DNA of 64,000 nucleotides from the NCBI GenBank assembly GCA_965240325.2, contig OZ251231.1, positions 2,232,001-2,296,000 on the forward strand, written 5' to 3'. The notes below the pieces were generated by a model, which saw only the letters and a program-made list of their open reading frames with translations, was not told the origin of the DNA and made no database searches. Both the position numbers and the translations under genes were made by a program. Shown here piece after piece: positions 1,212-43,667 of this stretch (positions within the stretch are counted from its first letter, which is position 1; each line of letters starts with the position of its first letter). Source of the DNA: Rebecca billardiae RCC1528. Its lineage: Eukaryota; Protista; Haptophyta.

Positions 1212-2835
1212 TCATCGCACGGTGGGTGCTGCCATTGTGACCGTGCTGCTGCTCTCCTGCTCGCGGAAGGCCGCGCAGCGCCGAAGCGCCACAGGATCTC
1301 CGCAGGGACGCTTGGACCCTGCAGTGCCGCGGAAGACCATGCTGTACGACGACTCCACGCCGCGCACCTCTGGAACAGTGTCGGTCGACACCATGCCAAA
1401 CGGGCAGCCCGGCGAGATCGCGCGAAAGAAGCGCGCGCGCCGCGTGCCGCCGCTCAGCTCGTGGTCGTCGTCGTCATCCTCATCGTCGAGTGCGTCGCCA
1501 AGGAGGCTCGCGTCGTGAGGGCTGCTAGCCACCCCCACGCCATCAGCGTTGGCGCTTGGGGAAGGCAGCGCGCCAACGCCGTGCGGCGTACAAGCCGCGT
1601 CCATCTCGTGCGCGAGCTGCCAGCCGTGCAGGTCGCTCGCAAGCCGCTCGGCCATGTCCACGCTGTCGCCGGGCGCAGTGGTCGCGCAGCTGCGCGTCTC
1701 CTCGTCCGCGCACAGCCACTCGGAGCGAAGCACGGAGTCCAGACTGGCGCGCTTGCACGGCTCGGCGACGAGCATCGAGTTGACAAGGGAAACGAGCGGC
1801 GCGGACCACGAGCACTCGCGAGAGTAGAACGAGTGGATCACGTGCACCGCCGACTTGCCGCAGCGCATCTCGTACTTGAGCCGCGCGAAGCGCCAGTCGC
1901 GCTGCGTCGCCTCGTCCAGCGGGAAGAAGCCCGCGCACATCGCGAAGAGGCAGATGCCGAGCGACCACACGTCGGCGGCGAAGCAGCCGTATCCCGCGTT
2001 GGCGCGCAGCACCTCGGGCCTGCGACGGCGTGAATGCGTGGGGGCGATCCGTGCACGCGCGCATGTGAGCACCTCGTGAGCGCGCTGCCGCGCCGTGTAT
2101 GGGGGCGCACGCAGGCGCGCAGGCAGGCCCATCGCAGGCGCGCGCGCAGCCACGCACGCTGCATAAGGGCGTGTGCCGCAAACGTCCTTCCAGCCACTGT
2201 CATCCCACGAGCCGTCATGGCACATCTTCTTCGTGTCCATCTTTGCCGCAAGGCCAAAGTCGAGCAGCTTGAGCTCCCCGTCCGGCGTGACGAGCACATT
2301 GTCGAGCTGCGCGGCGCGCGAGCCACGGCGCTGGGGGGGGGGGCAGCCGTGAGCATTCGGAGCCGCGGTGGAGGCGGGTGTGCACCGGGCAAGCGTCGTA
2401 CCGCGCGGCGCACACCTTGAGATCGCGGTGTGCGACACCCTTGCAGTGGCAATGCTTCACGGCGCGCACGAGCTCGAGGAAGAGCGGCCGCGCCTGCGAC
2501 TCGGTGAGCCGCCCCTGCGGATCGGTGTTGGTTGTCACGCGTTCGAAGAGCTCGCTGCCAGGCACGAGCTCCATGAAGACGTACGAGACGGCGCGCGCGT
2601 CGTCGTGGTGGTAGTCGAGAAGATCAACGATGTTCGGATGTCCGCGCACCGCCTCGAGCACCGAGCACTCGAGGTCAATCGCCTCGCGCGTGAACTGCGC
2701 CGTGTTGATGATCTTGCATGCGACCGCGCGGTCACCGTTCGCACGGTCGACGGCTCGCACGACGGCGCCGAACGCGCCCTCGCCGAGCAGAGCTTCCGGG
2801 TCCACTTCGAAGCGCTCCTTGATGATGATCGCCAT
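1212..2835 (-). CDS. Ser/Thr protein kinase (CAMK/SNF1-like), 3 exons: 2835-2416, 2306-2158, 2019-1212
   Basis: Motifs GEGAFG, VACK, HRDLK|LDN, DFG, YA|APE and DVWSLG. GT-AG introns 2415-2307 (109 nt) and 2157-2020 (138 nt) restore the HRDLKLDN and YAAPE motifs. Confidence 0.92.
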
Positions 2836-31323: not shown

Positions 31324-34300
31324 TCAGTGGATGGCGCACGCGCCGAGGACCGACCCACCCGGCGTCACCACGCACTCGCTGATGAAGCGCTGCGCGCGCG
31401 GAGGCAGGCACGCCAGCGCGTGCCTCGCGAGCGGCGAGATGAACGCGACGGCCGGCTCCAAGATGAGCAGCTTGAGCACCTGCGCGCGCACGAGCGCCGC
31501 GAGCAGCGGCCCCGTCCACGTGCGCACGTCGTGCAGCAGCGGCGTGCGCAGCGAGAGGAAGAGGATGGTCAGGCACATGCCCAGCCCGAGGAGGGCGTGC
31601 ACGCTCCACGCCAGCAGCACCTTCCACCGGCGCGGCAGGGACCACCACAGCTGCGCGATCCTGAGCGACGTCTCGTCGATGCGCGCGTACGCCTCCACCT
31701 CGTTCGCCTCCGTCGCGCGCGCGGCGCGCCGCCAGCGCGAGGGCGAGGCGGCGGCGGAGGGCGCGAGCGCGCGCGCCGAGCTGCCGCGCTCTACCCAAAT
31801 GTCGGAGCCGTCCGCGCCCCGGTCCGCCGCGTCGCGCTGCGCGGCCTCGGCGCGCGCGCGCTGCCGCTCGTACGCGCCGAGCAGCTGCGCGCGCGCCACG
31901 TCCGGCTCGCAGAACAGATCTGCCGTGGTGATGCGCCGGCCGTGCGCAAACGGCGCCTCGATCGGGAGGACGTGCACCATCGGCGTGGACTTGGAGGCGA
32001 GGCGCGCGGCCGCCTTTGGCTTGAGGCGGTAGTAGCGCGTGGCCACCTGCTCGGCGGGCGCGTCCGCCGCCTTGTACACGAGCTGCGCCTGCACGAAGCG
32101 CAGGTCCGGCACGTGCGCCGGACGGCGCTCCGCGGCCGCGCTGCGCCCGAGCTCGGCCGCGTCCGCGACCGCGTCGGCCGCGGAGCCGCGCCGCGCGCGC
32201 GGCGTGGGCACCACTGATCCCACCACCCGCTCGACGACGCTGCTGCGCCTCCGCGCCGCAGCCGCTTCGCGCTGCGCGAGGAAGCGCTGCCGCGCGAACT
32301 CCGTCGCGTCCGCCACGCCCACGCGCACGAAGAAGCCGACCATCTCGCCGCGGCGCGTCTGCACCGCCATCAGCGCCTTGGCCGGCATGCGGATGGACTC
32401 GCATGCGCCACCCAGCTCGTCGACTTGCGCGTTTGGGGCGCGCCGCGGGGCGAGGCCGACCTTGTGCGGGCAGACGTAGAGCAGCGTGTGCGCGCGAGAG
32501 AGCACGGCGAGCGGCACGCTGCTGCCGTCGCCGCTCAGCGCGATCGACACCTTGCGCGCGCTGCTGCTCGGCCGCGCGTCGCCGCCGTCCGCGCCGCCCG
32601 AGCCATTCGCGCGCGGCGGGGTGCTGTCGGGCGGCGGCGTGTTGAGCGCGTCCTGCCACTCCGCCGGCACCGCGCCCAGGTTGGACACGCTCCGTGCGCG
32701 CGCCTGGCTGAGCACGGACACCTCGATGCTGCGCTCGGCCGCCTCGGCGTCCGCGCTGGGTGGGTAGCGCGAGCTCGCGTCGGGCTCCGCCCGCTGAGAG
32801 CGCCCTCGCACGAGCCACGCAGGGCCCCACCGCGCGTCCGGCGCGCGCGAGGGCTGCGGCGGGCTCGGCGGTGGCGACGCCTCGGGCGCGGCCGGCGGCG
32901 CGACCGCCTGCAGCTGAGCGTCGCCGTCCCGACGCGCCACCGGCCGGCGCGGCAAGCGAGCACGCGCAGACGCAGACCGCTGCTTGAGCTCGCGGTCGTA
33001 CTTTTGGATCAGCCGCGCCTTGAGCTCGTGCAGCGGCGTCCGGCGCGTGGCCCATTTGAAGAGGAAGTAGTACACGCCAAACTCGAAGGGCACGGCCAGC
33101 CCGACCGTGAGCAGCGCGAGGCCGAGCGCGCCGCGCACGGGCGCGGACGATGGCTGTCCAACGCACGCGACGACGACGAGCAGCTGCGCGAGCAGCGTGT
33201 TGTACAGCACCGTCACGCGCTGCCGCGAGGTGACGAGCTCGCCCGGCAGCCGCGCGAGCCACCACGAGACGGACGAGTGCGCGATCAGCGCGGCGCACAG
33301 CGCGTGGCACAGGCCGGCGTCCTCCTTGCGCTTCCACAGCGGCACGGCCGGCATGCGCTCGACGGACACGTCCCGCCGGTGCGCGCACGCGAACAGCGAG
33401 CCGTACAGCAGCAGCAGCACGAAGAGGATCAGCAGCGCCGTGTACCGGAAGTCCGGCAGCTCCAGAGACGCCGCGCTCACGCCGGGGGCCGGGTCGTCGG
33501 CCGTGGGATCGAGCAGGCCTGGGCCGGGCAGTGGCTCGGCAGCGGGGCGCGAGACAGCGGCGAAGTCGGTGAGATGGGTACACTCACACGTGCGCGAGGA
33601 GCTTGACGGGTCACCCACGTCCGTGCATCCCGCGCTGTCCCACGCCGTGCCCGACCAGAAGCGGCAGCTGAAGCCGTCCTCGTCATCGGCCTGCAGCCTG
33701 CCCACGTCCACGGGCAGGGCGATGCTCACGACGGGCGCGGCCTCGCCCGGCCGGGTGAGCCGAGTGAGGTCGAGCTCGAGCGGCGCGCCGTCGGCCCACA
33801 CGCTCACGTCGACGAGCGTGTCGCTCAGCGCGTACCCGCGCAGCCCGGCGAACGCGCGGTAGTTGTTCTTCCACAGCGCCAGCGCGACGTGCACCTCGGA
33901 GGCGAGCCCTGAGCCGGCGGTGCAGTTGAGCAGCCCGCGCTCGGCCATGAACTGGAGGGTGGCGGCGGGGAGAGTGAAGGAGGCTGCAGCCGGGACGCCG
34001 CCGACGGCCACCTGCGGCGAGGAGACGACGATGTCCTCGAGCCCAAGCCTCGCCGGCTCGACCTCGAGCAGCGCGATGGCCACCGGGCCAAAGTCGGTCT
34101 CCACCGTCGTGCGCAGCGTGTCACCCAGTGCGACCGAGTGGAGCCGGCGCTTCACAAAGTCCTCGACCGCGGCGTTCACGCCGTCCGCGCGCGTGAGCGC
34201 CTCCGCGAGGGTCGGGTCGTCACTGTCCGCGGTGGGGAGGAATGGCGGCGTGGCGCTGGGCGTGGCCTCCCTCTCGGGCAGCACGCCCAGCGCGAGGAGC

Positions 34301-37129
34301 GACTCGATCGCGCGCGCAATCCAGTCGCCCGGAGGCGACGGCGGTGCCGAGGGGGGCGGCCTTGGTCGCGGGTCCGGACCAGCAGCTGGAGGCGGTGGCG
34401 CCGGCGCCGGGGAGGGCGCGGAGAGCGGCGACGGCAACGCAGGCGGCGATGACGGCGCTGGAGTTGGGGGCGATGCCGGCGGAGGGCTGCGCTGTGAGTC
34501 GAGAGGGGCCAGAGGCGGCGAAGGTGGCGGCAAAGGCGGCGTGGGCCTCGCTTGCCGTGGGCTCGGCGGCGAAAGGCTCGTGGGCGGGCTCGGCGGGGGC
34601 GCAGGTGGCGGCGAGCTCCGTGCCGGTGGCGCGGGCTGCGTGCTCGGCGGGGCAAATGGTGGCGGCGGGGCAAATGGTGGCGGTAGTGGCGGCGAGCTCC
34701 GCGGCGGTGGAGCGGGTGGTGTGCTCGGCGGCGGCGAGAGCGGCGGCGGCGGTGAATCGAACGGCGGTGGGCTCGCCAGCCGGGAGGGAGGCTGTGGTGG
34801 TGGCAGGCCTGGCGGCGGCACTGGCGGTAGAGGAGGCGGCGCGGGTGCCGGTGGAGGAGGCGGCGCGGGTGCCGGCGGAGGTGGCGGCGCGGGTGCCGGT
34901 GGAGGAGGCGGCGCGGGTGCCGGTGGAGGAGGCGGCGCAGGTGCCGGCGGAGGTGGCGGCGCGGGTGCCGGTGGAGGAGGCGGCGCGGGTGCCGGTGGAG
35001 GAGGCGGCGCGGGTGCCGGCGGAGGTGGCGGCGCGGGTGCCGGTGGAGGAGGCGGCGCGGGTGCCGGTGGAGGAGGCGGCGCGGGTGCCGGTGGAGGAGG
35101 CGGCGCGGGTGCCGGCGGAGGTGGCGGCGCGGGTGCCGGTGGAGGAGGCGGCGCGGGTGCCGGTGGAGGAGGCGGCGCGGGTGCCGGTGGAGGTGGCGGC
35201 GCGGGTGCCGGTGGAGGAGGCGGCGCGGGTGCCGGTGGAGGATGCGGCGCTGGTGCCGGTGGAGGAGGCGGCGCGGGTGGCGAGCTGGGCGGCGGGCCCG
35301 GAGTCGGGCTTGGCGGGGGCTTTGGCGGGCCCGGCGGTGTGAAAGGAGTGCCGCGCGGCGGGGGCGCCAGCTTTAGCGGTGGTGGTGGCGGGGGCGCAGG
35401 TGGTGGCATCGGCGGTGGCATCGGCGGCGGTGCAGGCGGCGATGGGCTGGGCGGCGCCGCGGGCGGTGGCGCTGGCGGCAGGCTCGGCGATGGGCTTGGC
35501 GGTGGCGATGGCGGCGGTGGCTTCGGTGAGCTCGGCGGTGGTTGGCTTGGTCGAGGGCTTGGAGGCGACTGCAGCGGTTGGCTGGGCGGCGAGGAAGGTG
35601 GCGGTACCGGCGGCAGTGAGGGCGGCGGCCTGGGCGGCTCGCCTGGCGGCGGGCCCGGAGATCGGCTTGGCGGCGGGGCCGGCGGGCTCGGCGGTCGGAA
35701 CGGCTCCGCATGCGGCGGGGGCGGCGGAAGTGGCGAAGCGGCGGGCGGAGGGGCAGGCGATGGCGCTGGTGGCGGGACCGGCGGGGTATTTGGCGGCGGC
35801 GAGCGCGGTGGCATGCTTGGCGGCACGCCCGGTGGCAGAGATGGCAGCGGCGGCGAGAGTGGGCTTGGAAGCGGTAGGCTAAGCGGCGCACTCAGCGGCG
35901 GCGGGCTTGGCGACGTGCTCGGTCGAGGCGGTGGCGGCATGCGTGTGCCGGGGGGCGAAGGCGGACGGCTCGGCGGCTGGAACGGCGCAGGCGATGGCAG
36001 GCTTGCGCCGGGTGGCGATGGCGAGGGCGGAGACTGCACTGTGCTCGGAGGCGGAGAGGGCGTCGGCCGCGGCGCAGGCGTGCACCCGCCGCACGCGCCA
36101 GCCGCCTGCTCATCAGAGCACAGCGCGCTCGGGCTGGTGCTGGTGCGTCCAGCCAAGCAGAGCACACTCGGGCTGTCCGCCGTGGCCACCGCCTCGCACG
36201 CGCCGGCGCCGAGCGCGGAGTTGTTCTCGAAGCGCAGACAGCCGTCAAGCTCCAGCGCCGCCGGCCCTCGCAGCAACATCGCGCCGCCCTCACGCCCTGC
36301 GCTGTTGGCACGCAGCGTGCTGTTCGTGAGCGCGACGCGCGCACCGCTGCCAGTGGCGAAGAGTGCGCCGCCGTCCCTGCTCGCCGTGCACTCGGACAGC
36401 TCGGTGTCGAGCAGCCGCAGCTCGCCCCAGTGCGCGTACACGCACCCGCCGTCCTCGCTGGCGGCGCAGCCCGCGAAGCGGCACCCTTCGCAGCTGCTCC
36501 CATCGTCCTGGGTCGAGTACCACGCTCCGCCCAGCGGCGCGTCGCAGCCCTCAAACGCGCAGTCCGTCAAGCTGAGCGCGCTCTGGTCGGAGAAGAGGCA
36601 GCCGCCGGAGGACGCGGCCGAGAGCCGGCTGAAGCGGCAGCGGGTGAGCGTGATGCTCGACGCGTACGCGTACACGCCCGCGCCCTGGCTGCTCGCCGTG
36701 CCGTTGCGGAACTCGCACTCAGTCAGCCGGACCTCCTCAGCCTCGTGCGCGAAGAGCGCAGCCCCCTGCGCGCCCGCGTTGCCCTCGAAGGCGCAGCCAC
36801 GCAGCTCGACGCGCCGCGCGTGGTGCAGCGCCACGGCGCCGTGCGCCGCACTCGCAAACGTGAGGTTGTGCACGAGCAAATCGTGCGGTCTGCGGCCCTT
36901 CTCGTTCGACACGACGAGGAGCGGCCGGCTGCCGAGGCTGGGCGTCGGGCTGAGCACGCACGCGCCGGATGGACACGTGACCGCGACCTCCCTCGTCTTG
37001 CCCACGCTCAGCGGCTCGGAGACACGGTATGCGCCGGCGCCGAGCTCGAGCGTGTCGCAGTGCCGCAGGCGCTCAAATGCGTCGGCGAGGCCCTCGCTCG
37101 AGTCCACCGCGATCGTGCGGCAGTTGCCA

Positions 37130-37180
<51 letters not shown>

Positions 37181-39120
37181 TCGCCAGGAGCCCTTGAAGC
37201 TCCGAGCGGCGGCGGCGAGGGTGGCGGCGAGGGCGAGGGCGGCGGCGCGAGTGTCAGCATGCCCTCGAGGTTGTCAAAGTGGCTGCCGTCGTCGCCCGTG
37301 CCGCACGCGCCCTGGATCTCGTCGTACTCCGACGCGCGGTCCTCGAGCGCCGCGCGCATGACGACCGGCGCCGCGCAGCCCTGCCCCGCGTCGAACGCGT
37401 GCCTGAACGCGCCGGTGTTGAGAGAGTCCAGCCGAAGCTCGGCAGGCAAGTAGACATGCGCCCAGATCTGCTCGTACGCGCCGCCACCGATCGAAGCGAA
37501 GAACTTCATGCTGATACCCTTCAGCTCGGCGGAGCCGCCGTGCGACGTCGGCCAGAAGCCGAACGAGACGGCCACCTCATTCGCCACGGCCGTGCTCGCA
37601 AGCTGCACGTACTCGAAATGGTCGGTCGGGTGCAGCTCGCGCTCGCACTCGGAGCCGTTGCGCAGCGAGGTGAACGTGGCCGGGTCGGTAGGCTCGAGTA
37701 CGACGTTGCAAATCGGCGGCGACGGCGGCGACGGCGGCGGCGGCGGCGACGGTGGTGGTAGGGGCGGCGGCGGGGGCGACGGGCTGGGCGGCGGCGGCGG
37801 AGGTGACGGCGGTGGGCTCGGCGGCGACGGTGGAGGCGCCGGCTCACCGGTGGATGGCGCGAGCAGGAGCACGCCCTCGAGGTTGTCGAAGTGAGACGTC
37901 TGGTTGTTTGTGCCGCACACGCCCTGGATCTCGTCGTAGACGTGCGCGCGATCCTCAAGCGACGCGCGGATGACGGCCTGCTCGCCACAGGCCTCGCCAG
38001 GCGGGAACACGTGCGTGAACGCGCCTCGGTTGAGCTCGTCCAGCTGCATCTGCCCCGGCAAGTAGATGCGCGACCAGATCTGCTCGTACGCGCCGCCGCC
38101 GATCGAAGCAAAGAACTTCATGCTGATGCCCGTGCTTTCGGTGAACGAGCCGTGCGACGTCGGCCAGAAGCCGAACGAGACGGCCACCTCATTCGCCACG
38201 GCCGTGCTCGCAAGCTGCACGTACTCGAAATGGTCGGTCGGGTGCAGCTCGCGCTCGCACTCGGAGCCGTTGCGCAGCGAGGTGAACGTGGCCGGGTCGG
38301 CGGGCTCGAGCACGACGTTGCAAATTGGCGGCGACGGCGGCGACGGCGGCGGCGGCGGCGACGGTGGTGGTAGGGGCGGCGGCGGGGGCGACGGGCTGGG
38401 CGGCGGCGGCGGTGGGAACAGCGGCGGCGACGGTGGCGGTGGCGACCATGGCGGCGGTGACGGCGGTGGGGTAGGCGGCGGTGAGGCCGGCGGCGGTGGC
38501 GGAGAGGGCGGCGGCGACGGCGGCGACGGTGGCACAGCCTCGCCCGAGGTGGGAATCAGCCGCGCCGTGCCCTCCACGTTGTCAAAGCCGCTGCCGCTGG
38601 CGTTGGTGGCGCACTCGGCTGCAATCTTGTCATCCGAGTGCGCGCGGTCCTGCAGCGCACCGCGGATGACGACATCGGCGTCGCAGGGCCATCCGGGGGG
38701 GAAGGCGTAGGTGAAGGAGCGGTAGTTTGTCTGGTCGTAGCATAGCTTGTCCTCGCCCGTGCCTTGCAGGTAGATCTGCGCCCAGATCTCGTCGAATGGG
38801 CCGCCCGCGACCGACGCAAAGAACTTGATGCTGACGCCGTTGCTCTGGCTGACGTTGCCGTGGGACGTCGGGCGGAAGGCGAAGGACACGGCCACTTCGT
38901 TCATGGCCCTCGCCGTCGCCAGCGCGATGTACTCGAAATGGTCGGTCGGGTGGAGCTGGCGCTCGCACTCGGAGCCGTTGAGCAGCGCGTTGAAGAGCTG
39001 CGGGTTGGCGGGCTCCACGACGACTCGACACGCGCCGGATGTGCCGGAGGCGTCTGAGGACGCGCTCAGCGCCGAAGCGAGTAGTGGTAGCATCTGGAGC
39101 AGAAGCGACGCGTGCGCCAT
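31324..39120 (-). CDS. Polycystin-1-like GPS membrane protein B: signal, 3x unknown domain, poly-Asp, Pmp-like beta-helix repeats, very long Pro-rich stalk, GAIN/GPS, 5 TM
   Basis: Signal MAHASLLLQMLPLLASALSA. FxxN/GGA repeats (FEGNAGAQGAAL, NSAGREGGAM). GPS CRFWSGTAWDSAGC..CECTHLTDFAAV. PKD1-like TM motifs TSRQRVTVL and LILEPAV. Confidence 0.85.
34831..35280 (-). repeat. 24-nt tandem repeat (~18 copies) encoding PPPPPAPA
   Basis: The + strand unit gcgggtgccggtggaggaggcggc is repeated with minor variants. Confidence 0.93.
37246..39030 (-). repeat. Three copies of a ~155-aa Cys-containing extracellular domain (39030-38540, 38322-37845, 37710-37246) separated by Pro linkers
   Basis: Each copy contains C.VV.EP..P..F..L.NGSECER.LHPTDHFEY..LA.....NEVAVSF.F.PTSHG...KFFAS..GG...QIW...FDN.EG. 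Confidence 0.93.
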
Positions 39121-39602: not shown

Positions 39603-42518
39603 TCATAGAAGCTGCTTCTCCGCCGCCGCGGCCTTGGCGCGCAGCGCGTCCTCGCCCGCATCTGGCGCGAGCGCCCCTGTGCAGCACCACCGGTGGCGGC
39701 CGGGCGCGGCGCATCGGGCGCAGGGACCATGGCTCGGATGAAAGGCGCTCCGCGCGCGCGCGCGCGGCTGCCGAGGCGCGCGCATGGCACGTGCCCGCGC
39801 GCGCACGCGCCCGCGCGCACCATCCTCCGGGAAGAAGTAGTCGTTGGCCATCCGGCCGCGGCGCACGTGCACGCCCACCTCGCAAGCGCGCACGCCGCCG
39901 CACAGCTCGCGCTCGAGCGCCTCCGCCTCCGCGACGAGCTCGGCCGACGGCACGAACAGCCAGCGCATGAGCGCGCGCAGCCCTGCGCCCGAGAGCCCGA
40001 CGTGCTCGCGGTACCACGCGCGCATCTGCGGGTTGGCCGCGACGTGCAGCGTGTGCGGCGCCCCCTCAAAGGCCGGGACGCACACCGCAGCGTCGCCCGC
40101 GCACTCGGCGCTGATCAGCTCGCTGCAGTAGCCGGGCTCGGTCTCGATCCAGTGCGCGCGCCGGCGCGAGTGCGCGCTGCCCAGCCGCGCGCGCACGGCC
40201 GCCCCGAGGTGCTCGGGCAGCGCGTGCACGTCGAGGCCGAGCGGGAAGTCGAAGCCGGGCAGCCACGACGGGTCGATGACGAGCGCGCGGCCGGTGGCCA
40301 TGCCCAGCAGCACGTACGCGAGGAGGTTGAACGCGCGGTTGCCGATGTTGTTGCAGTACGTCACGCCCATCAGCAGCCGCGCGCCGGCAGCGCCGCACCC
40401 GCCGCCCGCGCCGCCCGCGCAGCCGTCAGCCGCGCTTGGCCCGGCGCCGAGCGCGCGCGCGTGCAGCTGCGTGTAGTTGGCAATCAGCGCGGCCACGCGC
40501 GCCGCGTCGTCCGCCTGCGCGCGCGCGAGCCGCGCGCGCGCGTCGGCCTGCTCCTCGTCGGCCTCGTCCGCGGCGCCCGCGAGCTCGCCGACGAAGCGCA
40601 GCGCGCCGCCTGTGTGCGGCCCAAAGGAGCCGGACACCGCGTTGAGCGCCTCGCCCAGCTCGTCGGTGCGGCAGCTGAGCGCGCCGAGGTCGCCGCTGAG
40701 GAAGGCCTCGCGCTGCCGCTCGCCCGCCGCGCCGGTCTCCGCGTCGCCCAGCCCCGGCGTGTGCGTGTGCGAGGCGAGCGGCGAGGAGGCGTACGCGCAG
40801 CGCGAGAGCACCGCCGGGTGCGCGACGGCGTGCAGCGCCGCGCCGTGCATGCCCGCCGCCAGCATCGAGTAGGTGGAGCGGTGCGTGACGAGCAGCGCGC
40901 GGGATCGGGCGAGGAGCACGAGGTCGAGCATCGCGTCGCGCGTCTGCTGCGCGTGGCTCAGCCGCTCGTCGAAGCCCTCCATCCGCGTGCCGATGCGCTC
41001 GTTCATGCGCGCGGACGCGCCGAGGCGCGCGAGCAGATACCGCCCGACCGGCGTGTTGTCCGTCGCGAGGAAGATGGGCGCGGCCGACGCGTCGCCGGCG
41101 GGGGCTGGCGCGTCGGCCGCGGCGGCGTCCGCGCCCGCGGGCGCGCGCGCGTCGAGCACGAGGGCGCGCGCGCACTCGGCGAAGAGGCGCAGCTCCGGCC
41201 GGATGGCGCGCGCCGCGTTGACGAGCAGGTTGCGGTCGCGCCACTTCGCCGCGGCTGGATGCGACAGCGCCGCTGCCTCCAGCTCGGGCAGCACGCGCTC
41301 CAGCCCGGGCCGCAGCCGCGGCGGCGCGAGCTCGATCGCCGTGCGCAGGAACGTCGCGCTCGTGTCCGCCACGTGCCGGACGTGCACGAGCATGGCGACG
41401 AGCACGAGGTGCTGCCGGTACTCCTGCGGCTCGACGGCGCCGCCGTGCTCGCGCGTCTCCTCCGAGCACAGCTCCTTGAGCGTGCTCCACGCGACGGCGC
41501 GCACGTCCTGCGGCACCTCGATCACCGGGTGATACAGGCAGAGGCCGATCAACTCGGCGCCCGCCTCGAGCCGGCCGTGCGTGATCAGGCGCACGCCGCG
41601 GGCGAGGGCGAGGCGGACGCGCGCCTCGTCGGAGGGCGCGGCGCGCGGCTCCCCGCCCTCCTCGCCGAGCGCGAGCAGCGCCTGCAGCCGCTCCGCCGGC
41701 GCCATTCGCAGCCGAGCCATCCGGTGCGCGTGGTCGGCCAGGGCGCGCGGCTCGTCCGGCGGCTGCGCGCTGCACTCGCGCACAAAGGGTGACTGCGCGG
41801 CGACGAGGAGGGCGAAGAGGCGCTGGTCGACGAAGAGGCCCTCCTTCTCCGCCGCGAGCACGCCCTGCGACCTGTCTGCCGCGAGCGCCTCGCCCGACTC
41901 GCCGCGCGCGAGCGCGAGCAGCTGCGCGTGCAGCGCGCCGCTCAGCGCCAGCATCGTCTCCGCACCCTCGCCGAGCGACGGGCCGGCGGCGGGCGTGGGG
42001 AGCCACGGGAGGATGGCGCCGAGGAGCTCGGGGCTCGGCGGCGGCGCGTGGGCGCAGCACCCGCCGAACGACGCGCCGAGCAGGCCCGCGTCCACGAGCC
42101 GCCCCAGCGTGTACGCGCGGACCTCTGCGCCACACGAGCCGCCGTGATCAGTTGGCCCGCTGCTAATGCAGTTGCGCACGACGGTGTGTACCAGGCTCCC
42201 GACCGACGCCGCGTTCACCAGATCGGCGTCGATCCTCATGCGGCCTGCAGCGAACAGACAGCGCTCGACGTGCTGGATGGCCAGCCCCATCAGGCGCACC
42301 TGCGCGATCGGGTCGACGGCGATGCGCGTCTCAGCGCTCGCAGGCTGCTCGGGCGCGGCAGCCGCGCCGCACGAGCCGTCGGCGGCGCACGAGGCGAGCG
42401 TGTGCGCCTGAATGTCCTCGGTGCCGACGGCCTCCGCGGCACGCACGCACGCAAGCCGCGTGGCGAAGGCGACGGCAAGCCACAGGGCGCGGCGTCTGCT
42501 CAGCGTGGCTGCCGCCAT
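39603..42518 (-). CDS. Secretory-pathway fucosyltransferase-superfamily (GT11/23/37-like, GT-B) protein with permuted motif order; exons 42518-39821 and 39676-39603
   Basis: Signal MAAATLSRRRALWLAVAFA. Motifs IFLATD, DLVLLARS..STYS, NIGNR....TGRALVID and VGVHVRRG. In-frame GT-AG intron 39820-39677. Confidence 0.8.
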   Translation of the reverse strand: MAAATLSRRRALWLAVAFATRLACVRAAEAVGTEDIQAHTLASCAADGSCGAAAAPEQPASAETRIAVDPIAQVRLMGLAIQHVERCLFAAGRMRIDADLVNAASVGSLVHTVVRNCISSGPTDHGGSCGAEVRAYTLGRLVDAGLLGASFGGCCAHAPPPSPELLGAILPWLPTPAAGPSLGEGAETMLALSGALHAQLLALARGESGEALAADRSQGVLAAEKEGLFVDQRLFALLVAAQSPFVRECSAQPPDEPRALADHAHRMARLRMAPAERLQALLALGEEGGEPRAAPSDEARVRLALARGVRLITHGRLEAGAELIGLCLYHPVIEVPQDVRAVAWSTLKELCSEETREHGGAVEPQEYRQHLVLVAMLVHVRHVADTSATFLRTAIELAPPRLRPGLERVLPELEAAALSHPAAAKWRDRNLLVNAARAIRPELRLFAECARALVLDARAPAGADAAAADAPAPAGDASAAPIFLATDNTPVGRYLLARLGASARMNERIGTRMEGFDERLSHAQQTRDAMLDLVLLARSRALLVTHRSTYSMLAAGMHGAALHAVAHPAVLSRCAYASSPLASHTHTPGLGDAETGAAGERQREAFLSGDLGALSCRTDELGEALNAVSGSFGPHTGGALRFVGELAGAADEADEEQADARARLARAQADDAARVAALIANYTQLHARALGAGPSAADGCAGGAGGGCGAAGARLLMGVTYCNNIGNRAFNLLAYVLLGMATGRALVIDPSWLPGFDFPLGLDVHALPEHLGAAVRARLGSAHSRRRAHWIETEPGYCSELISAECAGDAAVCVPAFEGAPHTLHVAANPQMRAWYREHVGLSGAGLRALMRWLFVPSAELVAEAEALERELCGGVRACEVGVHVRRGRMANDYFFPEDGARGRVRARARAMRAPRQPRARARSAFHPSHGPCARCAAPGRHRWCCTGALAPDAGEDALRAKAAAAEKQLL

Positions 42519-42668
42519 CGCGACTGAGCAGATCAGCACGGGTCCCGGATTAGAAATCATCGGAAATCCTGCATGGAGTCTTGGCAGTGGCCAGGTCCGC
42601 GACCGAGACTCCGCACGTGAATCCTCCGACGGCGGTGAGGGCGCTCGGCGAGGACGCCTACAGCAGCA

Positions 42669-43667
42669 ATGGCACTGGCGTCGGCGCTCGCTCGCGCACC
42701 CGGGGCTGGGTCAGCTCCCTGGGTAGCAGCACGCTCGCGGCTCTCCCAACGCAAACTTTCGGTACTCGCGCACCGGTGGGTGGGTGAGGAGCCCTCGGCA
42801 AGCTCCTCGCCGCGCCGTGTCGCCATCTTCATGCACGGGATCCTCGGCAGCAAGGCGAACTGGGCGACACCAGCAAAGAAGGTCGTGGAGAGGCACCCGG
42901 GCTGGTCGGTGCTGCTGCTCGACCACCGCGCGCACGGGCAGTCCCCGGCTGGCACGGGCGAGCACACCGTCGAGGCGTGCGCGGCCGATGTGTTTGAGAC
43001 GCTCGACGCGCTTGGAGTGCGGCCGGACGGGCGGCAGGTCGTGTGCGGCCACTCGTTCGGCGGCAAGGTGAGCCTGGCGTACGCGCAGCTGTGCATGCAG
43101 CGCGGCCTGCCCCCGCCGGCGACGACATGGATCTTCGACTCGGTCCCAGGCAACCCGGCACATGCACCCGCCGCACCCACCGAGGACGCGTGGGATGCCC
43201 TCGCCGACTCGGGCCGCGCCGAGCAGTCGGTGCCGTTTGTGCTGCGCGCCGTGACGCGCGCAGCGGCGCGCGGGTACGAGAGCCGCAAAGCGCTTGTCAC
43301 CAGCCTGCAGGAGGAGCACGGGCTCGTGCCCGCCGTGGCGCAGTGGATCGCGCAGTCCACGCGCCCGGCGGAGCCGTCCGGCGTCGAGCTGTGCTACGAC
43401 ATGGCTGCGGTCAAGGCCATGTACGACAGCTATGCGCGCAGCTGCTACTGGCACGTGCTCGAGGGCTCGGACGCCACGGTGGGCGCGGTGGTGGCCGGGC
43501 GCAACGAGGGCGCGTGGGGCTCCGAGCAGCTCGCGCGGCTCCGCGCCGCCGCGGCTGAGTCGGGCGGGCGCGTGTGCACGCACACGCTCGACGCGGGGCA
43601 CAATGTGCACGTGGATGCGCTCGGCGCGCTGCTCGACACGATAGCGCCCACGTTTGAAGATGAATAA
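42669..43667 (+). CDS. Alpha/beta hydrolase (ABHD11-like), probably organelle-targeted
   Basis: HGILGSKANW, LDHRAHGQS, nucleophile elbow GHSFGG and the C-terminal AGHNVH. Ala/Arg/Ser-rich leader. Confidence 0.9.
   Translation: MALASALARAPGAGSAPWVAARSRLSQRKLSVLAHRWVGEEPSASSSPRRVAIFMHGILGSKANWATPAKKVVERHPGWSVLLLDHRAHGQSPAGTGEHTVEACAADVFETLDALGVRPDGRQVVCGHSFGGKVSLAYAQLCMQRGLPPPATTWIFDSVPGNPAHAPAAPTEDAWDALADSGRAEQSVPFVLRAVTRAAARGYESRKALVTSLQEEHGLVPAVAQWIAQSTRPAEPSGVELCYDMAAVKAMYDSYARSCYWHVLEGSDATVGAVVAGRNEGAWGSEQLARLRAAAAESGGRVCTHTLDAGHNVHVDALGALLDTIAPTFEDE

Follow-up and report, generated by a model that had tools for sequence, protein, structure and literature searches.

In a 64,000-nucleotide stretch of the Rebecca billardiae RCC1528 genome (contig OZ251231.1, positions 2,232,001 to 2,296,000, referred to at its full length as the window), an open reading frame (ORF) of 985 codons plus stop on the reverse strand, 42560..39603, encodes a permuted fucosyltransferase-like protein, termed P0001. 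The reading that we favour, with a probability of roughly 0.8, is that P0001 is a single secreted or Golgi-lumenal protein with a naturally circularly permuted GT-B fucosyltransferase domain of the GDP-fucose type, that is, of the kind represented by glycosyltransferase (GT) families GT11, GT23, GT37, GT65 and GT68. In the canonical order, the N-domain with its GxGNR loop is followed by the motif I strand (HxRRG), a helix, motif II (ATD) and motif III (DL..L..ST[FY]S). From N to C, P0001 reads instead motif II, motif III, N-domain (NIGNR..RALVID) and motif I, and so departs from the canonical linear order. All four motifs lie in one frame where an earlier, sequence-only reading of this DNA had placed them (Table 1). 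That reading had claimed that each occurs once, and a six-frame scan with hidden Markov models (HMMs) sees no second N-half or C-half in the window. Of the features of the GT-B fucosyltransferase superfamily, motif I H-x-R-R-G (here H898-V-R900-R901-G902), motifs II and III, and the G-x-G-N-[RQ] loop with the hydrophobic helix and ..R.L..D behind it are present. The permuted chain would start with the post-motif-I helix, continue with motifs II and III and with the old C-tail fused to the old N-lead, and close with the N-domain and the motif I strand; the donor-binding Rossmann domain would then consist of the first segment plus the extreme C-terminal strand, with the acceptor domain encoded between them.

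The GC content of the window ranges from 57 to 81% across 2-kb steps and long ORFs occur in all six frames, among which the ORF of P0001 is the coding one. In its frame, GC at third codon positions (GC3) is 0.86-1.0 per 150-nt step from ~42500 to ~39801, with second positions at 0.45-0.71, and this codon periodicity disappears below ~39800. Because GC3 is high throughout until ~39800, and in agreement with the motif positions, both halves and the linker between them share one coding frame.

The swapped order is most directly seen by comparison with relatives. A word search led to an orthologue, P0002, from an independent Logan assembly, which is 49% identical to P0001 over the catalytic part, colinear with it and of the same motif order; it ends 35 residues past HVRRG, and a convergent gene lies ~120 nt further on (locus L001). 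An exhaustive HMMER search with the alignment of these two catalytic parts (A2) gave 29 proteins, whose order class was assigned by local domain mapping against the A2 profile. First, eight proteins have the permuted order, namely, P0001 to P0005, P0007, P0008 and P0009 (seven beyond P0001), and they stem from contigs of 53-70% GC, from several samples, and from independent assemblies as well as metagenomes. Second, P0010, P0011, P0014, P0020, P0023, P0024 and P0027 map in canonical order. In P0010, for instance, the N-half (profile 302-488) matches residues 408-591 at 1.7e-38 and the C-half (profile 53-164) residues 626-737 at 3e-26; the corresponding values for P0011 are 1.2e-34 and 5.9e-24. 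Third, the N-half region of P0001 aligns with its counterparts in P0010, P0011 and P0012 at 1e-34 to 1e-45, and both of its segments are homologous to one contiguous domain in P0010, P0011, P0014 and P0024, with the order swapped. Together with the breakpoint alignment described below, this homology bears out the earlier claim that the halves are exchanged and that the break falls just after motif I.

The normal-order relatives P0010, P0011, P0014, P0020, P0022 and P0024 share 26-37% identity with P0001 over ~290-350 aligned columns. Those from marine metagenomes (P0010, P0011, P0012 plus P0016, P0014, P0020 and P0024) have the same motifs, conserved cysteines, C-tail and N-lead, but differ in their canonical N-to-C order and in their accessory parts. 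P0011 (L007:925-2745) carries a C-terminal CPW_WPC domain (PF09717, 28.4 bits against a cut-off of 23), whose name comes from Plasmodium surface proteins. P0010 (L014:29-2365) has a region of ~330 residues before the fucosyltransferase domain that looks multi-pass hydrophobic and lacks a Pfam match; by eye it is nucleotide-sugar-transporter-like, and the P0010 cluster includes one member from a source labelled 'merc' (ERR1719353_511328). In P0021 (588 residues) the C-half occupies residues 1-215 and is followed by ~370 residues with no detectable N-half, which might represent a third architecture or reflect a wrong gene call.

Within the permuted group, P0003 and P0008 both come from SRR30664515, and at least two paralogous permuted lineages therefore seem, judging from these sequences, to coexist in one organism. 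In a tree built after de-permuting the alignment, a clade with 96-98% support unites the six long permuted proteins, P0007 and P0009 group weakly (81/75), and the normal-order P0010, P0011 and P0012 fall unresolved among the permuted ones. The approximately unbiased test does not reject one origin of the permutation (p=0.45 and 0.33), and the tree gives no proof of it.

To characterised fucosyltransferases the link is more distant. The Pfam family O-FucT (PF10250) matches the first part of P0001 over profile positions 246-321 of 326 (E 0.011-0.12, 12.3-15.8 bits); in P0002 it matches the first half of the protein, and only the C-terminal positions 214-321 of the profile align (E=5e-5, 21-23 bits). 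No match to XG_FTase (PF03254) is found for P0001, and the cut-off of this family is passed only by the distant normal-order P0027 (39.8 versus 23.4). Two-sequence half profiles run against PDB gave only chance matches (phosphofructokinase, a deaminase), and a deeper alignment was needed; for this purpose, a 36-row alignment (A8) was used as a profile against all PDB sequences. First, it matched the plant enzymes AtFUT4 (9NQH, 1.2e-8) and AtFUT1 (5KOE/5KOP, ~6e-8), each in two stretches of swapped order: in AtFUT4, profile 130-328 falls on residues 108-348, which hold GLGNR..LVD and the motif I strand, and profile 39-142 on residues 382-491. Second, POFUT2 (5.9e-6), POFUT1 (2.6e-5), NodZ (1.3e-3) and FUT8 (1.8e-3) were matched with the C-half only. 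HMM matches had been expected to split into two out-of-order segments, and they do so in normal-order relatives and solved GT37 fucosyltransferases alike. At the residue level, motifs II and III of P0001 (ATD; DL..L....S-T-[FY]-S) align with the same motifs of AtFUT4, AtFUT1 and the POFUTs, and its N-domain loop, NIGNRAFNLLAYVLLGMATGRALVID, in which N, R and A are invariant, aligns with GLGNRLLTLASVFLYALLTDRIILVD of AtFUT4. Language-model features of residues 725-916 (Atlas) likewise resemble those of FUT8_N_cat, NodZ and GT11 fragments at 0.93-0.96. Given the O-FucT match of P0002 (E=5e-5), normal-order relatives at 1e-24 to 1e-38 and GT37 at ~1e-8, the resemblance of P0001 to GT-B fucosyltransferases is, as judged by these sequence comparisons, far beyond chance.

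Plant GT37 enzymes (AtFUT1, 5KOP/5KOE/5KOR; AtFUT4, 9NQH; PF03254) are thus the nearest solved relatives of P0001. They differ from it in domain order, in motif I, which is IQ[VI]R in GT37 and HVRRG in the permuted family, in the N-terminal region, and in their host, a land plant rather than an alga. With NodZ and FUT8 (GT23) and with POFUT1 and POFUT2 (GT65 and GT68; PF10250), any single alignment covers only one half, since the halves are exchanged; P0001 also lacks the SH3 domain of FUT8 and any EGF/TSR-acceptor features.

A structural model agrees with this picture. Residues 436-920 of P0001, modelled with AlphaFold2 using A8 as the alignment, are predicted to form a single body (predicted local distance difference test, pLDDT, 84.8; predicted template modelling score, pTM, 0.89), in which the C-terminal strand VGVHV (model 460-464) lies in blocks of pLDDT 96-98, and the linker contributes a helix of 38 residues (model 233-270, pLDDT >90 over 241-270). 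When the model was compared with 48,161 chains using VIA-align, the top five were fucosyltransferases. Its C-half matches NodZ 191-317, POFUT2 302-413 and POFUT1 242-380; the C-terminal part of the model falls on the N-part of FUT8, in an alignment that extends through chain residue 381, including motif I. The AlphaFold comparison, a kind of check proposed in the sequence-only reading and made here with sequential aligners, hence pairs the N-terminal part of the model with the C-domains of NodZ, POFUT1 and POFUT2, and the C-terminal part with the N-part of FUT8 through motif I. The first 12 rows of a Foldseek search are all AtFUT1 (E ~0.2-1.2, template modelling score ~0.27, ~235 columns), and the Atlas shape search places XG_FTase and NodZ clusters first. 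Sequential aligners can fit one half at a time, and the matches obtained with the predicted model are of this form.

The same model bears on whether the donor domain is completed within one chain. In a domain-swapped dimer, the donor domain of each chain would be completed by its partner, with the C-terminal motif I strand or with the entire N-half; a linker of ~125 residues with a 38-residue helix, followed by a terminal catalytic strand, would permit such swapping, and the N-terminal helical region could mediate oligomerisation. Nevertheless, the pTM of the monomer and the pLDDT of its C-terminal strand blocks predict intramolecular assembly with confidence, and we hold an exchange between chains to be very improbable.

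An insert of ~25 Ala/Pro/Asp-rich residues (residues 470-494, window 41078-41152, reverse strand) separates the first helix from the ATD strand. None of the relatives has this insert, which is modelled at pLDDT 54-70 and is probably a GC-driven low-complexity expansion. An in-frame intron behind it (residues 469-493) was considered and rejected, the sole GT..AG pair spanning 55 nt, which is not a multiple of three.

The linker bears on the origin of the permutation. Normal-order domains start with a lead of the form ..LL..Y..LH.R.MDP..P.KRFYVA and end with a tail of the form ..FS...SC.....LQA.GG.FNP; in the permuted proteins, the tail (..SC..ALQA.GG.[FY][ND]P) runs directly into the lead (..LI..Y..LH.R..). 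These elements are the C-terminal end and the N-end of the catalytic domain in P0011, P0012 and P0016, and in P0011 the CPW_WPC domain comes after the C-tail. The linker is conserved in sequence and has a GC3 of 0.94-1.0. It is thus the former C-tail fused with the former N-lead, the arrangement predicted for a tandem duplication whose outer halves were lost. At the other end, the first conserved element of the permuted domain (RPEL.LF..CA.A) corresponds to the helix after ..DLYFP.. in the normal form, so that the breakpoint comes after motif I and FFPE[DE] but before the next helix; it interrupts the donor-binding Rossmann domain rather than falling between the two domains. Tandem duplication and trimming had been put forward by the sequence-only reading as the probable origin; the preserved tail-to-head junction supports such a history, in which a normal-order gene would have been duplicated and its outer halves lost, without proving it, and, of the forms to be sought among relatives, permuted and normal-order ones were found but a tandem one was not.

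Intron evidence suggests how the break itself might have come about. At the normal-order P0012 locus (L013), an N-half ORF is followed by a GT..AG interval of 132 nt and a C-half ORF; with 1590-1721 (+) removed, ..DFYFPED joins EKRELIKFAAC.. in frame to give a complete canonical protein, which an ORF-based gene caller had divided into P0012 and P0016. The second exon equals P0016 over the overlap, except for two substitutions. This intron is of phase 1 and sits exactly at the permutation breakpoint. In P0001, conservation and codon bias end after ..DYFFPED-G, whose Gly codon carries G|GT (39821|39820), a rare choice for a gene of GC3 ~0.95; the codon position and phase of this candidate donor are those of the L013 intron, and an AG follows 144 nt on, and then 24 codons. 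P0001 ends soon after motif I: the stop lies 83 codons past VGVHVRRG in the unspliced ORF, and the ~35 residues given by the sequence-only reading hold only if the candidate intron (39820-39677) is removed. All eight permuted proteins stop 3-35 residues past ..FFP, with unrelated tails. The coincidence of intron and break is suggestive, one data point rather than a demonstration, and it is compatible with a break that used an intron position. If so, the ancestral normal-order gene would have had a phase-1 intron at the breakpoint, exon 2 of the first copy and exon 1 of the second would, after tandem duplication, have merged into a single gene, whose new 3' end would still show the former splice donor as the G|GT.

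The same observations raise the question of whether the permutation is an artefact, the ORF merging exon 2 of one normal-order gene with exon 1 of the next in a tandem array, or reflecting a contig misjoin. The sequence is stop-poor, with 70-77% GC and long ORFs in all six frames, one normal-order relative has an intron exactly at the break, and the continuity of the molecule is that of the assembled sequence. Yet six-frame scans with family HMMs found no additional N-half or C-half, neither upstream nor downstream, whether within the 64 kb of the window or on the contigs of seven relatives; the next gene starts ~500 nt downstream, and in L001 a convergent gene follows; GC3 remains at 0.94-1.0 through the linker, which is conserved and modelled as a confident helix; and the architecture is common to eight proteins from independent assemblies and metagenomes whose GC ranges from 53 to 70%. 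An artefact is, in our judgement, extremely unlikely, and both segments appear to belong to one polypeptide. A downstream exon restoring the C-half after motif I is excluded by these scans and by the close neighbouring genes.

With regard to function, P0001 may be an active inverting GDP-fucose-type transferase of the secretory pathway, because its motif residues do not vary among the permuted members, which share only 30-50% identity: in motif I the H, the first R and the G, in ATD the A and the D, in GNRA the N, the R and the A, and also the R..T..ST..LAA helix. In GT-B fucosyltransferases, the essential Arg of the H-x-R-R-G motif binds the phosphates of GDP-fucose, and its H, first R and G are also present in the normal-order relatives. 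A pseudo-enzyme, whose permuted domain would bind a nucleotide-sugar or glycan in a lectin-like or scaffolding role without transferring fucose, would fit the position of the catalytic motif I strand at the extreme C-terminus with a variable tail, the sub-threshold Pfam scores, the large non-catalytic N-terminal region, and the HVRYG that P0009 has in place of HVRRG. However, the invariance of the motif I H, first Arg and Gly, of ATD, of the ST[FY]S helix and of GNR in eight such divergent proteins is the purifying-selection pattern of a working active site, and the model is confident through the C-terminal strand; we therefore regard loss of catalysis as improbable.

Several points weigh against a permuted, active fucosyltransferase. 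Pfam scores fall under the gathering cut-off (12-23 bits versus 31.5). The single transcript is deduced from ORF continuity, codon bias and conservation, and the joining of the C-terminal motif I strand to the sheet, beside the ATD strand, is predicted. Activity, donor and acceptor are putative. Moreover, the breakpoint intron is known from one relative, P0010, P0011, P0026 and P0029 being continuous there, and no tandem N-C-N-C intermediate was found among the relatives.

Preceding the permuted domain are ~445 residues that the sequence-only reading had described as an unrecognised helical region of ~450 residues. This description stands: the extension has no Pfam match, and AlphaFold2 predicts helices and no strands at low confidence (pLDDT 48). 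It is weakly conserved save for four invariant cysteines (C101, C168, C169 and C263; alignment A7), hhalign found no similarity between it and either the fucosyltransferase domain or the extension of P0010, and P0007, a stop-to-stop ORF of 533 residues at most, is without it. A relic of the lost N-half of the first copy was sought here and rejected: BLASTP of residues 1-450 against 600-916 was empty, and hhalign of A7 gave a probability of 0.1% against the normal-order alignment and the same against P0010:1-400. Atlas features of the extension named XG_FTase, FUT8_N and O-FucT at 0.88-0.89, under the lead threshold, and leave such a relic unsupported. An apparent remnant of motif I that precedes the C-half in P0009 (HVPLHPDHP..FDP against HIRRGHPPHPHPDFYFP in P0012) was dropped as well (BLASTP E=0.72). 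We read the extension as an unrelated addition, which may serve as a stem or as an acceptor-binding or oligomerisation module.

Table 1. Features of P0001 and its surroundings, in window coordinates.
Feature	Position	Strand	Basis
Whole ORF P0001	39603..42560	-	ORF list, GC3, colinear orthologue P0002
Signal-peptide-like hydrophobic start from the second Met (M15), MAAATLSRRRALWLAVAFATRLACVRAAEA	42429..42518	-	Translation read by eye; short hydrophobic leaders also in orthologues
N-terminal extension, residues 1-445	41226..42560	-	Alignment A7, Pfam, hhalign, AlphaFold2
C-half, residues 452-600: donor-binding Rossmann domain without its first strand; starts with helix AIRPELRLFAECARAL; motifs II and III	40761..41207	-	Pfam O-FucT profile 246-321 of 326; model matches
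Motif II, IFLATD	41058..41075	-	A and D invariant in 8 permuted proteins
Motif III, AMLDLVLLARSRALLVTHRSTYSMLAAG (AMLDLVLLARS..STYSMLAAG)	40851..40934	-	Invariant L, R, T, S, T, L, A, A; aligns with the AtFUT4 and AtFUT1 motif
Junction/linker, residues 601-724: old C-terminal tail (..SC..ALNAVSGSFGP), then old N-terminal lead helix (VAALIANYTQLHARAL)	40389..40760	-	Comparison with P0011, P0012, P0016
N-half, residues 725-894: acceptor-side Rossmann domain; YCNNIGNRAFNLLAYVLLGMATGRALVID at 40272-40349	39879..40388	-	Matches to P0010, P0011, P0012; AtFUT4/AtFUT1
Motif I, VGVHVRRG, last conserved strand of the protein	39855..39878	-	H, first R, G invariant in 8 permuted proteins
Post-motif-I segment RMANDYFFPED, conserved; conservation among all relatives stops here (permutation breakpoint)	39822..39854	-	Alignments of relatives
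Candidate 144-nt in-frame GT..AG intron, otherwise translated non-conserved tail	39677..39820	-	Sequence, loss of periodicity, comparison with L013 intron
Candidate short terminal exon (24 codons plus stop) or end of unspliced ORF	39603..39676	-	Sequence; relatives show no conservation

The downstream neighbour of P0001 (window 31324-39120, reverse strand, 2,598 residues) has its ATG near 39120, ~500 nt past P0001, and therefore leaves no room for a missing C-half. It encodes a secreted, Pro-rich protein with three repeats of ~200 residues that contain conserved Cys, long SPPPP/extensin-like runs, a poly-Asp run, a tandem array of the 8-residue unit APAPPPPP, a right-handed beta-helix (PF13229, 3e-9) and a GPS motif (PF01825, 3e-6), which is followed by hydrophobic segments. 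Since AtFUT4 and AtFUT6 act on arabinogalactan proteins, the adjacency of a hydroxyproline-rich glycoprotein gene and a GT37-like fucosyltransferase gene is suggestive; the pairing is not kept in L001. Upstream, a divergent ORF (window 42669-43667, forward strand) encodes an alpha/beta-hydrolase (Abhydrolase_1, 3.9e-12). In two related loci, ORFs of 845 and 1,007 residues (L006:2157-4694 (+) and L011:525-3548 (+)) lie directly upstream of the permuted P0003 and P0005, respectively; they have no Pfam match on record and no match to the fucosyltransferase HMM.

Circular permutation itself is a well-known phenomenon, with GH70 glucansucrases relative to GH13, permuted DNA methyltransferases and saposin/swaposin as classical natural cases. 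As in these, the homologous halves of P0001 are swapped, the junction derives from the former termini, and the arrangement fits a duplication-deletion model; unlike them, it concerns another fold, and the chain is broken within the second Rossmann domain of a GT-B enzyme, immediately behind its catalytic Arg motif. The GT-B glycosyltransferases form one of the largest enzyme superfamilies, and to our knowledge no natural circularly permuted member is known; our full-text literature searches yielded no account of a GT-B glycosyltransferase, or of a fucosyltransferase, with circular permutation. A bolder claim, that P0001 represents the first natural, catalytically active GT-B permutant, which arose at the exon level and then gave rise to two or more paralogous lineages among haptophyte-like algae of high GC, we can put forward only tentatively, and we consider it doubtful in its full extent.

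P0001 is nonetheless a clear natural example of circular permutation in the GT-B fucosyltransferase fold, with both orders present among relatives still 26-37% identical to it, a junction of the old termini that has been kept, and a plausible genomic mechanism in the intron at the break. It indicates that the donor-binding Rossmann domain tolerates a first strand, that of the catalytic Arg motif, supplied from the far C-terminus, which is useful for GT-B protein-engineering rules and for studies of folding order. For annotation, linear profile HMMs catch half of the domain below threshold, and permuted enzymes are consequently missed in algal genomes. The permuted family enlarges the already extensive and poorly understood set of fucosyltransferase-like genes of algae whose secreted polymers are rich in fucose.

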